Shown: positions 5,633-60,369 of the stretch, in pieces
How the letters are laid out: every line of letters starts with the position of its first letter
Numbering within the stretch: position 1 is the first letter of the stretch
Assembly: GCA_965649825.1 (NCBI GenBank)
Contig: OZ287695.1
Location: 620,001 to 684,000, forward strand
Direction: 5' to 3'
Length of the DNA stretch: 64,000 nt
Source: Penicillus capitatus
Taxonomy: Eukaryota > Plantae > Chlorophyta
Position numbers and translations under genes: made by a program
Notes under the pieces: generated by a model
Told to the model about the DNA's origin: nothing
What the model saw: the letters and a program-made list of their open reading frames with translations, nothing else
Database searches by the model: none

Positions 5633-8244
5633 TCAAACACGCAGGAGTTCAGTGAGCGCCGCCCGAGTTTCATCCGAGCACTTGGCGTTACTGTCGTCAC
5701 AGATACGATCGAACGGAATCCTGTTGAGTTCATCTGTGCTGTTCTTGTTTGCACCAGCTGCTACGAGCATCTGCCCATAGCTATACCTAAGCGACGGTCA
5801 ACGGGATCGGTAACTTACCTTGGCCGTTTGCAATTTGCCATAAAAAGCTGTTACGTGAAGTGGAGACCCGCGATCGTCTTTAACAATTGCTTCGACATCT
5901 GCACCGTGCTCAAGGAGGATCTTCAAACGTCTCCATTAGCACGGCAGTCCGACACAACCGCTGCTTTACTTTTGTAATCTCGATGTGTTCTCTAAGGGCA
6001 GCTTCGTGCAATGGAGTAAAACCGTTGGTGCTGGCAGTGTTGATGTTCGCGCCGGCTTCTATAAGGATCTGCATTCCGTCGTTAATTAAGTGGACATAGG
6101 AGCGAAGGCACGATTCCGACCTTCACAATCTGTATAGATCCACGTTGAGCAGCTCTTTGCAGTGGTGTCCAACTGTTTCCGTCAAAAACATCTATGTCTG
6201 CCCCAGCGTCTACTAGAATCTTGCTCCACTGACTTATAAACAAGTAGCCAAACGAATTCAAGGCCAACTAACCTTTGCAATCTGTGTGCACCCCCCTGCA
6301 GCTGCATCAATAAGTGGAGAAAAGCCACGGTCATCGCTGAAACTGTCGAGGTACGCGCCATGGTCGACAAGATACTTTTCGGAACTTCTCAGCAAGAGAG
6401 TCGACACAAAGCACTGAGTTAACCTTTACGATGTTGACGTGATTTTTGTTCGTTGCCATTTGAAGCGGTGTCGAGTTGTCGTCGTTTAAGACATCAGTGT
6501 CCGCTCCATGATCAAGGAGAATCTGCTTGCGCGACCGGCACTGCGAGACATGAAAGATGTCTCGCCAACCTTTACGACTCGAGCGCTGTTGAACACCGCA
6601 GCTTCATGCAGAGGCGTATTGCCGTTGGCACTCGGGATGTCAATTCCCGCGTCATACTTTATTAGTACCTAAAGGGAGCAGTCATTTATTAGAAATGAGA
6701 GGACTTGGTGTCTGTCATTCCGCGATTAAGCATCTGCACAGGAGTCTGGCCTTACCTGAGCACACTGCGCGGCGTTAAGCGCAGCAGCTGCGTGCAGCAG
6801 AGTCGAGCGATCCGGTTTCGGAAGTGACTGTACGTCTTTCTCTCCGTAGGTGGTGTCGACGTAGAGACCGGCCAAGATGAGGGCCTCGGCGTCAATGGAG
6901 TTGTCCGACCGCATGGCATGGAGCATCGCCTGCGCAAAACACCGTCCACACTTCGACTTCTATGCAGTTTACTTCGATCATATCCGATTCCGAGAACAAG
7001 GCATAGTGCTTCCGCCTCTCCTCCAACTTGACCTGGCGCGTCGCAACGCACCTCGAACGCTGGGCGCATGTGCTGAAGACGAAGAGTGAATCTCGGATCT
7101 CACATCTTGATGACAGGTGATGGTCCGTTCGATCCAATCGAAGAAGTAGTCGACCCTCGTGTAAACAGCAGGCTCGTCCCCGGAACAAGCGTCGGCGTCG
7201 TCCCCCGCGTAGCCGAATGACGTGATGCCGACGATCATGTCCAGCTGCGGCTTCCCATCCTCCACTTGTCCGTAAGGAGCGTCCATCAGCAGCAGAGGAC
7301 CTCCAGAGTCACCTGCCAGACAGTGTAAGAACATTGCTTGTGAGAGGGTGCTGTGGGGGTCAGCCCAGATGACCTTTGCAGGTGTCCTCCCGCAGACCCC
7401 CAGCGCAGATCCAGCTCTTCGGGTCGACGTCCTGCGGTCTTGTTTTGCATTTGTCCTGCCCGACCACGGCGAGATGACCCGCCACCTGCAGCTTCTTCGC
7501 GACGACGCCGTCTTCGGTGAGTCCCCATCCTGTGGCACCGAGATATTGACCCTTGTCCAGGGGAACGTAGCCCGTGCCCAATCGCGGCAGCGTCACGCCG
7601 GCGTCTCTGTCGAGCTTCAGCACGGCGACGTCGTGTCCATGTCCGACGTCGCCTGTCCACTTGGGGTGGACGTATCCTGCGATCGCATCAAATACCTGCA
7701 CAGACGCGACATGCAGGCCTCGCTTCCGTCACAGAGTGATTCGCAGCTACCTGGTGTTCTTCTGCCTTCTTGCGGTCGTGTATCCCGCAGTAGACGATGG
7801 GCGACAGACCGACGGTGGGGCGAATGTTAGGGTCCACGCAGTGAGCCGCCGTCAGGACCCAGTCGCGTCTGAACAGCGTCGCTCCGCACATGTGGCGGCG
7901 AGTGCCACGTTCTCTCAGGCTGCATGCGTATGGAAACCTTCCAGGCGGCGCCGTCTTTCCTCTCTGTCAACCGTTGGCCTTGAATTCTGCGGCAACAACG
8001 TTTGTAACGCTTACCACTATTCTTCCGACGGCGGTTGTGTTCGACTTAGAGCTTATGTCACTGTTTTTTAATGCTTCGCACAAGAGAAGGTCGTACAAAT
8101 GCAAGTGTTTTCGTTTTCCGCACCTAGAGTGTCGACGGATGCCCATGCCGTCAGCAACAGCGAGTGCAGCGTCAAATACGTCAGCGCGAAGAGCCACTTC
8201 TTCGAGCGGTGTGCTTGCGCGGAAGACGGACGGAGCGCGAACAT
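5633..8244 (-). CDS. Signal peptide + S1A serine protease + ankyrin repeats, type 1, copy A (7 ANK exons + terminal exon)
   Basis: R|[14 protein letters not shown]; TAAHC, GHDVAVL, DTCKG|DSGGP; phase-0 introns link CHQD|[20 protein letters not shown]|AMLHAMRSD.. to the ANK exons; ends ..CSDETRAALTELLRV*; no lesion found. Confidence 0.85.
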
Positions 8245-8379
8245 CTTCTCCAACGAGAATGACGCTTAGATGCGGAAACAGTCAACCAGTCCCGAGTCAT
8301 CTGTTGTACCAAATCGATCTCGAATCATTTGCGTCCCGACAGAATCGCATCATAAGACGTAAGTTGTTAGACGTGATCG

Positions 8380-9060
8380 ACGATTTCGGACAGACCCAGA
8401 ACTGTCGAAATTGTTCGGCGTTTAATGGCGATTAAACCAGAGATTCGAGTTTCAATCTCCAGCATCTCAGATGGAGAAGATCAGCTACTGGCTGTTTGTC
8501 TAAGGGCAAGTGACAGAATCCCAGATTCACTGTCGAAGTGTAAGCTCATCGATCGGGGTGTGTTGTCCTTTCATGCACATTTGTTTTCGTAAAGCGGACC
8601 GCTCTTAAACGAATGCACTTAATATAATGTAATGTCGAGATACATCCTTTCGCAAAGATGTCTCGAGGCCGAGATGCAGCAAACAATCAGCACTAAGCCT
8701 CACCGAATGGGAGTTCAGATTTCACTGTGAAATAAACAGCGAAGACATTTCTGAACTCTGGACGTACCACTCAGTCATTTCCATAACAAAGGTGAATAAT
8801 GTGATCTCCATGCGAAATGTTACTCAATGACAGAAAGAGTGAGAATGTTGCTATTGTCATCATTAAACAGACGATGTTAAAATGCAACAGATGTTTCAGT
8901 TTCGGTTCTAAGATTTTCTCCAACAATGATGCGCAGCGATTGATAACAATCAGCATTCGATAACAGACACAATGGTCGTAATATCCTCTCACTTCTTGCA
9001 TACAGGAAATCATCAATCGTTTGGTCTCCCTTTCACCCGATCTGAATTTATGATAAGAAC
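8380..9060 (+). pseudogene. Degenerate conserved block downstream of type-2 protease-ANK genes, probably a dead convergent gene
   Basis: Homologous to about 20330-21000, 41290-42130 and 45900-46560; recurring frame KSENV.I.I.KQTM.KC.RCF.FG.K; many indels. Confidence 0.45.
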
Positions 9061-58447: not shown

Positions 58448-58717
58448 GCTCTGTCATGACTCTCGAGGAAGATTCGGAGTGTTCTGGAACAGATATTTTT
58501 CTAAAGGCAGATGATCAGAAAGAGGCCGGTCTGCCCACTATCGTATCTCTTACCGCCGTCGATTCGCTCGAGTCAAAAGACGTACGTCTCTGCATACGGT
58601 TTTCGAAGTACGATTCGAGTTTCTGCTGTTGGACGGCTGAGACAGAAGGTTCACGTTCTGCTGGTCTATTATAACCAAAAGACGAACAAGCGAGCGTCGA
58701 AAGCTCTCCGGAAGACA

Positions 58718-60369
58718 ATGAAGATTCCTGTTTCTATCCTTCTTTTTATTTTAGCCGGAGATTTCTCCGTCCTCTGTACTCGCCGTAAGGCATCGACCGG
58801 CGCCGCCACACGGCCAGACACGCGTTCTCCGCGAGGTCAGGCCATGGCGAATTGAGTACCCTCGGACGTGCGAACCCCTACCCGTTGACGACGCACAATT
58901 CAGATTCACCTGTGTTCGACCGAGAGGTAACCAAGAGGCCGCTACCCACACTCTGTCTGCGTACCTCTGCTGGCGAATGTAGAGTACCACGAGTGAAGAG
59001 AGAAGGGGACAGTCGTCCGTGACGAAGCGGGTGAACTACGGAGGCCTCACGGCCGATGCACGCATCCTGGTGTACCCGCGTACATCGTCTGTGTCGATAT
59101 ACGCCCTGCTATTTAGGAAGCGGTCTCCACCATCGAGCGAGACGACGCAAGGAGCCTCGCTGCGTTGATTCGTGCAGGTCTGGATGTCAATGCGACGCAC
59201 TACGAGCCGGAAGGATATGACTACTCTCCCGACGAGATTCCATCGTTGCTGCACTGGGCGGTGGGCTTCGAGGCACTCGAATGCGTCAAGGCACGTCCAT
59301 GCCCTTATCGTTTCTCCCGACTCAAAAACGGTCTCTGGATTGAAGGTCCTCACGAGAGAAGGAGCGGACGTCGATTCCACCACTCTGTGTTCGTTCACAC
59401 CGCTTCACGATTCCGTCCTGATCGATTCGAAGGAGATAGCACAAGTTCGTCCCTGGAACATCGCTTTACCTATGACGCTACCCGTTGCTGCACGAACCGC
59501 ACGCGACAATTGTGACCTTGTCACCGGAGTTCGCCCTTCTTCGCTTTCCGACACCCGGCGGATTGCGCATGTGGATTGTCTCAGCCGCTGTTACCTGTTC
59601 CCTATCAGGGTCTTTGCCTCCTTGACACAGCTGCTCGTCGATGTGTTCAGGTTCTCTTCGCGGCCGGCGCGAACATGGATGCGAAGGACTACTTGGACAG
59701 GACGCCTTTGCATCAGGCAGCCCATTACGGGTACAGCGACATGACAGAGGTCTTGTCCTTCTTCTCTTGCACTCTATCATTTGTATGTAGCAGTTTCTCA
59801 TCGAACGGGGCGCTAACATAAGTGCGATAGACGACAGAGGATGGACGCCGCTGTTTATCGCAGCGGTCTACGCGAACCCTGACGTCGTGGAGGTCAGACG
59901 AAACGACTCACGCTCTGCTAAAGTCATGCCTGATAGGTCCTCATCAGAAGGGGAGCAGACGTCAACGTCAGCGGTGAACGAGGCTGGACGCCGCTGCACT
60001 ACGCAGCGCTCTCTAACGACGTCGACACGGCTCGGGTAAGATCGCCGGCAAACAGGCGTCCATAACGTGCGGTCGAACAGGTCCTTCTCGATTCCGGCGC
60101 AGACGTCGGTGCCAAGGATTACGTCGTGGAGCAGACGCCACTGCATACAGCATCGGCAGAAGGCTGTTTCGAAGTCGCACAGGCAAGACGCATTGCGACG
60201 CGCGATCCTGCGATTGCCTTTTTTGCAGATTCTAGTGGAAGCCGGCGCATCGAAGACCATCATGGATCGTTTTGCCAATACACCAGGCTACTACGTTTGC
60301 TCTTCCGCATTCTTTCTCAAATGCAGTGCCGCAACTCGCGCCGCTCTTGTCGAACTGCTGACTCCTTGA
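58718..60369 (+). CDS. Signal peptide + short linker + ankyrin repeats, no protease (6 ANK exons + terminal exon)
   Basis: Spliced in frame: MKIPVSILLFILAGDFSVLCTR|RHGELS..FDRE|STTSEERRG..DARIL|EAVSTIERDD..SLLHWA..; ends ..CSAATRAALVELLTP*. One 205-nt intron (59446-59650) may hide decayed exons. Confidence 0.75.

Follow-up and report, generated by a model that had tools for sequence, protein, structure and literature searches.

Tandem genes for predicted secreted trypsin-ankyrin fusion proteins in Penicillus capitatus, with one ankyrin repeat per phase-0 exon

A stretch of 64,000 nucleotides (nt) from the green alga Penicillus capitatus (GenBank assembly GCA_965649825.1, contig OZ287695.1, positions 620,001 to 684,000 of the forward strand; hereafter the window) was found to contain seven paralogous genes, A to G, in which an S1 protease is joined to ankyrin (ANK) repeats, and an ANK-only gene, H. 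Our results suggest that these genes probably form a tandem family of predicted secreted S1A protease-ANK fusions, in which the repeat array was built by duplication of a small module and was changed by unequal recombination and gene conversion. The feature described in an initial annotation of this DNA, 5633 to 60369, was bounded by the stop codons of gene A and gene H. All seven protease-ANK genes were on the minus strand and were complete open reading frames (ORFs) of 640-742 amino acids (aa) in 14-17 exons. From the N- to the C-terminus, each gene encoded a hydrophobic, signal-like peptide, a short propeptide, an S1 protease in three exons, a linker exon, an N-cap exon of 174-183 nt with one degenerate repeat, six to nine one-repeat exons, and a tail exon of 138 nt with half a repeat and two conserved cysteines. 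Self-comparison of the window revealed two types, with A, D and G as type 1 (76-91% nucleotide identity) and B, C, E and F as type 2 (~70% nucleotide identity). The predicted genes and their internal ANK exons were as follows.

Gene A (type 1), 5633..8244, minus strand: 14 exons, 640 aa; predicted signal peptide, S1 protease, linker and ANK domain; catalytic residues H101/D153/S243, Asp at position 189.
Gene A ANK exons, minus strand: 6668-6570, 6522-6424, 6374-6273 (102 nt), 6219-6121, 6068-5970, 5920-5819 (102 nt); N-cap 6929-6756; terminal 5770-5633.
Gene B (type 2), 9160..11774, minus strand: 14 exons, 643 aa; architecture as in gene A; Ser at position 189.
Gene B ANK exons, minus strand, all 99 nt: 10184-10086, 10036-9938, 9892-9794, 9740-9642, 9589-9491, 9439-9341; N-cap 10447-10274; terminal 9297-9160; GC donors after ANK2 and ANK6.
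Gene C (type 2), 21117..23765, minus strand: 14 exons, 653 aa.
Gene C ANK exons, minus strand: 22152-22054, 22005-21907, 21860-21762, 21709-21611, 21557-21459, 21408-21298 (111 nt); N-cap 22415-22239; terminal 21254-21117.
Gene D (type 1), 35013..37627, minus strand: 14 exons, 644 aa.
Gene D ANK exons, minus strand: 36049-35951, 35903-35805, 35756-35655 (102 nt), 35601-35503, 35451-35353, 35303-35199 (105 nt); N-cap 36310-36137; terminal 35150-35013.
Gene E (type 2), 42252..45023, minus strand: 15 exons, 683 aa; seven internal ANK exons.
Gene E ANK exons, minus strand: 43444-43346, 43292-43194, 43147-43049, 42990-42892, 42838-42740, 42684-42586, 42534-42436; N-cap 43686-43504; terminal 42389-42252.
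Gene F (type 2), 46679..49446, minus strand: 15 exons, 684 aa; seven internal ANK exons; holds a recent conversion or duplication tract.
Gene F ANK exons, minus strand: 47856-47758, 47708-47610, 47563-47465, 47411-47313, 47259-47161, 47107-47009, 46958-46860.
Gene G (type 1), 51960..55031, minus strand: 17 exons, 742 aa; nine internal ANK exons.
Gene G ANK exons, minus strand: 53451-53353, 53305-53207, 53158-53057 (102 nt), 53002-52904, 52850-52752, 52701-52603, 52548-52450, 52397-52299, 52248-52147 (102 nt).

Genes A and B were modelled by hand from reading frames, splice sites and tblastn matches of homologues, and the exon boundaries of C to G were projected from these two models through MAFFT alignments. 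Two dynamic-programming gene finders, one scored by codon usage and the other by ORF length, gave over-split or read-through models, so the manual models were used. When the window was scanned for motifs and for open 99-nt stretches bounded by AG and GT, dozens of ankyrin units came to light that followed the pattern '(I/V)LLxxGAxV(D/N)....G.TPLH.A...G...(I/V)VK', with a splice donor directly 3' of each. The introns of the seven genes were 43-89 nt long (median 51); acceptors were AG throughout, and donors were GT except for GC in nine of the 96 introns. These predicted splice sites were backed by open frames, consensus sites and conservation in at least seven paralogues. GC-AG introns were thus unusually frequent, and two more were present in gene H. 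Their donors read gc(g/a)agt and occupied fixed orthologous positions: all four type-2 genes had one behind ANK2, three of these (B, E and F) also had one behind the last ANK exon, and the others followed D5 and exon 3 of F or were the two in H.

The seven genes contained 47 internal ANK exons (A6, D6, G9, B6, C6, E7, F7). Forty of these were 99 nt long, five were 102 nt, one was 105 nt and one was 111 nt. All 47 were in phase 0, and all were broken midway along helix 2, between consensus positions 21 and 22, starting with '(I/V)L(L/I)xxGA' and ending with '..(I/V)(V/A)K'. The initial annotation, which described internal exons of about 99 nt, all in phase 0 and with a single break point, was therefore accurate, and its counts (A7, B7, C7, D7, E8, F8, G10, and 6 in the ANK-only gene) were right once the N-cap exon was included. 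The introns that followed ANK exons were 43-58 nt, which gave an exon-plus-intron period of ~150 nt. Tandem Repeats Finder (TRF) detected a period of 152 at 47213-47521 in gene F; it found the array of this gene only, which is the youngest, the remaining arrays lying under its identity threshold. An alignment of 52 exons showed tandem repeats of ~33 residues with the TPLH and GADVN consensus, and Pfam (PF00023/PF12796) recognized the ANK domain far above its curated cut-offs, with E=1e-92 for Ank_2 and E=3e-70 for Ank in gene G, and with similar values in B and H. Many 99-bp one-repeat exons also occur in vertebrate ankyrin genes. One-repeat exons with a constant phase and break point characterize a described class of repeat genes, in which the exon equals the repeat unit and arose by local duplication of an intron/exon module (Street, Rose & Barrick 2006, as summarised in PMC4585158; see also PMC1553488). 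Neighbouring introns were also homologous here, as expected if each was duplicated along with its exon, at F3/F4, C3/C4, G4/G6 and a block in a family gene outside the window. Unlike the class as it is summarised there, the window genes have tiny introns and a module of only ~150 bp, the homology of neighbouring introns is still visible, and recent two-exon duplications and the deletion of one unit can be dated between paralogues.

Further family members were found outside the window. A type-1-like protease ORF was located on contig ctg340412_28x_l of ENA assembly ERZ25074695 (L008), and this contig carried two family genes with at least seven and with eight internal phase-0 exons of 99 or 102 nt. 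In the first of them, a block of ~300 nt (exon-intron-exon-intron) was duplicated with ~90% identity in exons and introns alike. A gene with five internal phase-0 exons of 99/102 nt was present in a second assembly (L009). Contig ctg329475_12x of ERZ25074695 (L006) was collinear with window positions 24742-36595 and carried an A-like gene with six such exons. Compared with gene A, its ANK4-6 and their introns showed 0-2 differences and its ANK1-2 showed 11-14; this gene is another conversion mosaic. At 5124-9475 of the same contig, an LTR (long terminal repeat)-retrotransposon-like pair of gag-protease and reverse transcriptase-RNaseH-integrase was inserted, which was absent at the collinear place of the window. 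At least 10 further distinct protease-exon ORFs were found on at least eight contigs of related assemblies. In the public protein collection, the spliced family genes appeared only as exon-sized ORF fragments; no spliced family member was present in that database, apparently because the genes of ERZ25074695 had been called prokaryote-style.

The number of repeats varied among paralogues, as the initial annotation had claimed. Internal exon counts in 11 family members were 5, 6, 6, 6, 6, 6, 7, 7, at least 7, 8 and 9. In a per-exon neighbour-joining tree, positional orthologues were recovered with 92-100% bootstrap for type 1 (97-100% for A1/D1/G1, A2/D2/G2, A3/D3/G3 and A6/D6/G9) and for the first, second and last exons of type 2, and only the middle type-2 exons were mixed. 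The tree placed G5 and G7 with A4/D4, and G6 and G8 with A5/D5, which indicated that three exons had been added to gene G, two of them as one block. E and F each had one middle exon more than B and C. Together with the duplicated block outside the window and a unit missing from a copy of gene H described below, these placements record both gain and loss. The introns between modules were homologous as well: those after F3 and F4 were identical at 49 of 53 positions, those after C3/C4 at 81%, and those after G4/G6 at 80%. When F4 and F5 were compared, identity was ~93% in the intron upstream and over the initial ~48 nt of the exon, and then fell to ~50%, including at the synonymous sites of the T-P-L-H codons. 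Because synonymous sites take part in the drop, it marks the mid-exon end of a conversion or crossover tract. The higher identity of the F3/F4 introns (92%) than of the exons (64-69%) was considered as possible evidence that the exons had diverged rapidly by adaptation; this reading was rejected, because the synonymous third positions of the TPLH codons also differed, as at a tract boundary.

Conversion was also evident between paralogues. D and G were 97-99% identical from upstream to the middle of the protease, after which G became A-like (94-97%), and the distal ANK exons of type 1 were 66-85% identical in all pairs. The amino-acid identity of type-1 protease domains was 89-94%, versus 70-74% for orthologous ANK exons. 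The description of the type-1 protease cores as nearly identical was thus roughly right, but the contrast with the ANK exons is partly the product of recent gene conversion, and thus of concerted evolution, of the 5' halves, and constraint is not its sole cause. Synonymous divergence (dS) was 0.12-0.23 in the protease versus 0.36-0.48 in the ANK exons, which is consistent with such concerted evolution. The very high identity of the 5' regions of D and G suggests a very recent conversion or duplication. A segmental duplication of ~4 kb with 91% identity (35561-39617 versus 52962-57008) reached upstream of both genes and included a 174-aa ORF (38416-38937 and 55817-56338, minus strand) with no Pfam match.

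Gene H lacked protease exons, and no protease remnant was found in a search near it. Its N-cap and tail exons were homologous to those of the protease-ANK genes. Its 3' part is firm and its 5' signal-peptide exons are tentative. Gene H and two related copies were as follows.

Gene H, ANK-only, 58718..60369, plus strand: no protease exons.
Gene H exons, plus strand: N-cap 59117-59290 (174 nt, GC donor); ANK 59346-59444, 59651-59749, 59794-59892, 59937-60035, 60081-60182 (102 nt); terminal 60229-60369; phase 0, AG acceptors, GT/GC donors.
Gene H tentative 5' exons, plus strand: exon 1 at 58718-58784 (MKIPVSILLFILAGDFSVLCTR), signal-like; exon 2 at 58904-58926 (23 nt).
H', 162..1047, plus strand: second ANK-only copy, cut by the window start, one exon-plus-intron unit shorter; terminal exon 907-1047.
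H'', 26302..26629, plus strand: truncated third copy; N-cap (162/174 match, in-frame stop) and first ANK exon 26531-26629 (94/99); similarity ends at 26654.

Window positions 1-674 matched 59185-59853 and positions 657-1495 matched 59979-60812, so that the offset between H' and H jumped by ~140 nt, and H' contained one 143-nt unit fewer than H. The H' exon at 615-713 was a hybrid: it resembled H3 in its 5' half and H4 in its 3' half, with the junction near GWTPL. Exon 2' of H' was frameshifted, and this copy is probably a pseudogene to judge from its sequence. Because breakpoints and conversion tracts lay inside exons, the changes point to in-register unequal recombination and not to intron-mediated shuffling. 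The initial annotation had proposed a cassette system working by exon gain, loss or skipping. Evolutionary gain and loss stood, but the exons were not the units of exchange, since tracts and deletion junctions fell inside them. The word system over-reads ordinary repeat-gene evolution: positional orthology was largely kept, shuffling was limited, and a scan of the six frames of the window with an ANK hidden Markov model (HMM) found units only within the seven genes and the H copies, with no orphan cassettes.

These results are probably best explained by a history in which the ANK array would have arisen by tandem duplication of a module of ~150 bp, made of a 99-nt phase-0 exon and an intron of ~50 nt. 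As each copy of the module carried its intron, every repeat would have come to lie in its own symmetric exon with the same break point. The number of repeats would then shift by in-register unequal recombination, by one or two units in either direction, and gene conversion would patch sequence among modules and among paralogues. Since the period is constant, breakpoints may fall anywhere, exons included, with the frame and the fold undisturbed. Selection would keep the protease and the ANK framework and leave the concave binding face nearly free to change. The ANK domain may act as an exosite that recruits or anchors targets, and the paralogues may differ in what they bind.

Comparison with relatives revealed that the layout had not been inherited as such. 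Among the best 120 matches, full-architecture homologues came from Bryopsis sp. KO-2023 (16 proteins), Ostreobium quekettii (one), EukProt (three) and environmental sequences (three), at ~30-35% identity. The 16 Bryopsis proteins were annotated as 'hypothetical proteins', and most of them were on one contig of 7.4 Mb. Five Bryopsis proteins were mapped exactly onto their loci, and their genes contained 2, 3, 6, 7 or 8 internal 99-nt one-repeat ANK exons, all in phase 1 and broken inside the codon of Gly27, with introns of 100-800 nt. In the Ostreobium gene, the ANK exons were 258 and 489 nt long, and one intron occupied the phase-0 position between 21 and 22 that is used in the window. Three protease introns were common to the window genes, Bryopsis and Ostreobium. 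The window proteins thus resembled the Bryopsis and Ostreobium proteins (BSKO_04794, BSKO_04795, BSKO_04699, BSKO_03471, BSKO_04809; Ostreobium P0045) in domain order, in the positions and phases of protease introns, in the Cys-x-Cys tail exon and in ~35% full-length identity. The Bryopsis genes were likewise clustered, and in them, too, each 99-nt exon encoded a single ANK repeat, with 2-8 such exons per gene. However, the phase and the break point of their modules and the length of their introns differed from those of the window, and the ANK domain of Ostreobium was almost intronless, which implied that each lineage had amplified its own intron-bearing module. Lineage-specific modules are strong evidence, at the level of gene structure, that the one-repeat-per-exon layout would be a footprint of module duplication rather than an ancestral or selected design. 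A literature search found no paper describing a trypsin-ANK family of Bryopsidales; the Bryopsis genome preprint contained no mention of trypsin, and the Halimeda genome paper contained none of ankyrin, trypsin, protease or intron.

The protease domain matched Pfam Trypsin (PF00089) over profile positions 1-220, with E=1e-37 for G (130 bits, cut-off 20.6) and 1e-35 for B. S1A chains in the PDB that matched at E<1e-10 numbered 407, and the domain aligned end to end with matriptase, elastase and kallikrein from the mature N-terminus on. The catalytic triad His57/Asp102/Ser195 was intact in all seven genes (T[AV]AHC, D[IV]A[VL].., GDSG[GN]P). Putative activation sites lay between ..GR and IVRG in A, between ..GK and IVRG in D and G, and between ..F/Y/N and I(I/L)G in type 2, and aligned to residues 1-2 of mature matriptase. 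The proteins are therefore predicted to be zymogen-type S1A proteases. Position 189 was occupied by Asp in type 1 and by Ser or Asn in type 2. Type 1, with Asp189 and the ..G(R/K) site before IVRG, would be trypsin-like and possibly self-activating; type 2, with Ser/Asn189, has a predicted cleavage after F, Y or N (before IIG or LIG). By these residues, the two types probably differ in cleavage specificity, and they could form a cascade. Similar to matriptase, plasma kallikrein and factor XI, the proteins combine a chymotrypsin fold, a predicted activation cleavage giving an I-V/I-x-G N-terminus, and attached binding modules. The CUB, LDLa or apple modules of those proteases are N-terminal, whereas here the protease is followed at the C-terminus by a predicted ankyrin solenoid, an unusual feature in a protein of the secretory pathway.

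The residues around TPLH differed strongly between copies, as had been noted initially, and entropy peaked at consensus positions 2, 3, 5, 10, 13, 14 and 33. Consensus positions 2, 3, 5, 13, 14 and 33 are randomised in libraries of designed ankyrin repeat proteins (DARPins) to create binding surfaces. The most variable positions here were therefore those of the DARPins; unlike in the DARPins, the variation is natural and includes position 10. The ratio of nonsynonymous to synonymous divergence (dN/dS) was calculated by the Nei-Gojobori method for nine paralogue pairs, with the six DARPin positions chosen beforehand as the face and the other 27 as the framework. The ratio was 0.13-0.26 in the protease and 0.40-0.59 in orthologous ANK exons overall, where it split into 0.75-1.70 for the face and 0.25-0.44 for the framework. 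The proportion of nonsynonymous to synonymous changes differed between face and framework in 9/9 pairs (Fisher p 7e-5 to 0.03). An excess of nonsynonymous change on the ANK binding face was thus present in every pair. The face ratio was above those of framework and protease, but in none of the pairs did it exceed 1 significantly (binomial p 0.22-0.73). For gene A and its collinear counterpart on ctg329475_12x, the least diverged pair, the face ratio was 0.58 and that of the rest was 0.17. To judge from these ratios, a face value near 1 may be explained by relaxed constraint, which is typical of ANK surfaces, as well as by diversifying selection.

Diversifying selection would be the core of a different explanation, in which the family serves adaptive recognition: the ANK face would be selected for change by pathogens, grazers or wound debris, changes of modules would be kept for their binding specificity, and the genes would be a green-algal analogue of the Ectocarpus candidates. 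In Ectocarpus, ROCO-LRR and NB-ARC-TPR genes (LRR, leucine-rich repeat; TPR, tetratricopeptide repeat) have one repeat per exon, as the initial annotation had correctly cited, and are reported to vary in repeat number and to be under diversifying selection (PMC3341825); alternative splicing of the one-repeat exons is reported for brown-algal ROCO genes (PMC11378527). Both are algal gene families in which each exon encodes one repeat and the number of repeats varies, the clustered genes undergo birth and death, and solvent-exposed positions are variable (PMC3341825; PMC11378527). Several results agree with an adaptive family, including face ratios of 1.5-1.7 in three of the nine pairs, a face dN that exceeded intron divergence in all nine pairs, the tandem arrangement of genes that undergo birth and death down to the pseudogenised H' and H'', the large and clustered set of genes in Bryopsis, the many protease-exon ORFs in related assemblies, and the predicted secretion of the proteins. 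However, the window genes carry ANK instead of LRR or TPR, are predicted to be joined to a secreted protease instead of a signalling nucleoside triphosphatase (NTPase), and belong to the green and not the brown lineage; no NTPase domain (ROC-COR or NB-ARC) was found in a Pfam search of these proteins. Moreover, the order of exons was largely kept without intense shuffling, the face ratios (0.58-1.70, lowest in the least diverged pair) did not significantly exceed 1, and variability at face positions is generic to ankyrin repeats. An adaptive recognition family is accordingly possible but on the whole rather unlikely. That symmetric ANK exons are skipped, so that one gene gives isoforms with different repeat numbers, is improbable. 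Any ANK exon could be removed in frame (phase 0-0, length a multiple of 3), weaker GC donors recur in type 2 at two set places, behind ANK2 and behind the last ANK exon, and alternative splicing of one-repeat exons is reported for the brown-algal ROCO genes (PMC11378527). Nevertheless, duplication of the module yields symmetric exons by itself, with no need of a function in splicing, and the loss of an internal repeat joins repeats that are not neighbours, although this is often tolerated.

A rearrangement of ANK modules by the nuclei of the giant multinucleate cell, as hypothesised for Ectocarpus, would give a repertoire within an individual. The modular architecture and the frequent recombination between modules would suit such somatic diversification, and they are the only features of the genes that do so; the relatives that carry the family are coenocytes. 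The recombination events that were seen are, however, fixed germline differences between paralogues, and positional orthology is kept. Unlike somatic cassette receptors of the VLR (variable lymphocyte receptor) kind, the window held no orphan cassette banks in the six-frame scan and no incomplete germline gene, the ORFs of all seven genes being complete, which makes somatic diversification extremely unlikely. As little credence is due to the view that the copies are redundant or dying and that their variation is functionally meaningless drift. The broken H' and H'' and the face ratio of about 1 are what decay would leave, but seven genes have kept their frames over 14-17 exons, with canonical splice sites, intact triads, and dN/dS of 0.13-0.26 (protease) and 0.25-0.44 (ANK framework); the intact ORFs and the purifying selection largely refute it. 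The most far-reaching version, a repertoire-type recognition or effector system of coenocytic green algae, in which ANK exons would be used within the individual through regulated skipping or recombination among nuclei to give secreted proteases of many specificities for wound sealing or pathogen defence, is very unlikely.

Module duplication followed by unequal recombination and conversion remains the preferred explanation, and several points weigh against it. All splice sites of the gene models are predictions, secretion is predicted from the N-terminal sequence and the conserved S1A disulphide cysteines, and the function suggested for the ANK domain is wholly conjectural. The face dN (0.5-1.1) exceeded the divergence of orthologous introns (0.30-0.53) in 9/9 pairs, which could reflect positive selection beyond the power of the tests. 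The face positions were taken from the ANK/DARPin consensus numbering and would apply by analogy, gene conversion blurs the trees and the pairwise ratios, and the dS of type 2 (0.7-1.2) was near saturation for the Nei-Gojobori method.

Other features were located between the members of the cluster. An intronless ORF of 468 aa at 30131-31537 (plus strand) contained a tandem array of four ubiquitin-like domains (TRF period 234; E=9e-57 for Pfam ubiquitin) ahead of a Cys-rich C-terminal region of ~150 aa with no Pfam match, and its paralogues or orthologues with 51-76% identity were present on several contigs of related ENA assemblies. Two paralogous ORFs of ~340 aa in inverted orientation, at 16707-17783 (plus strand) and 27273-28280 (minus strand), shared 74% nucleotide identity and had no Pfam match; in each, the N-terminus was signal-like, a region was rich in Cys ('CPMWTCS...CxxWxC'), and transmembrane segments lay at the C-terminus. 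Possible shorter relatives of this pair were located at 15311-15853, 24269-24778 and 1729-2202. An inverted repeat pair of ~600 nt with 89.6% identity (19153-19744 versus 41150-40538) lay between cluster members, with long ORFs overlapping on both strands, and may be a fragment of a transposable element.

The family is a clean new example of a known mode of repeat-protein evolution and not a demonstrated diversity-generating machine. It provides an unusually legible record of the growth and shrinkage of a repeat domain, in which the modules are so short (~150 bp) that units of common origin by copying can still be recognized by their introns. It also flags an undescribed, expanded family of predicted secreted trypsin-ankyrin fusion proteases in siphonous green algae. 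These trypsin-ankyrin proteins are candidate enzymes for the cleavage of specific targets during wound response or defence, and if exon skipping or positive selection were true of them, the family would be a green-algal counterpart of the candidate immune receptors of Ectocarpus.

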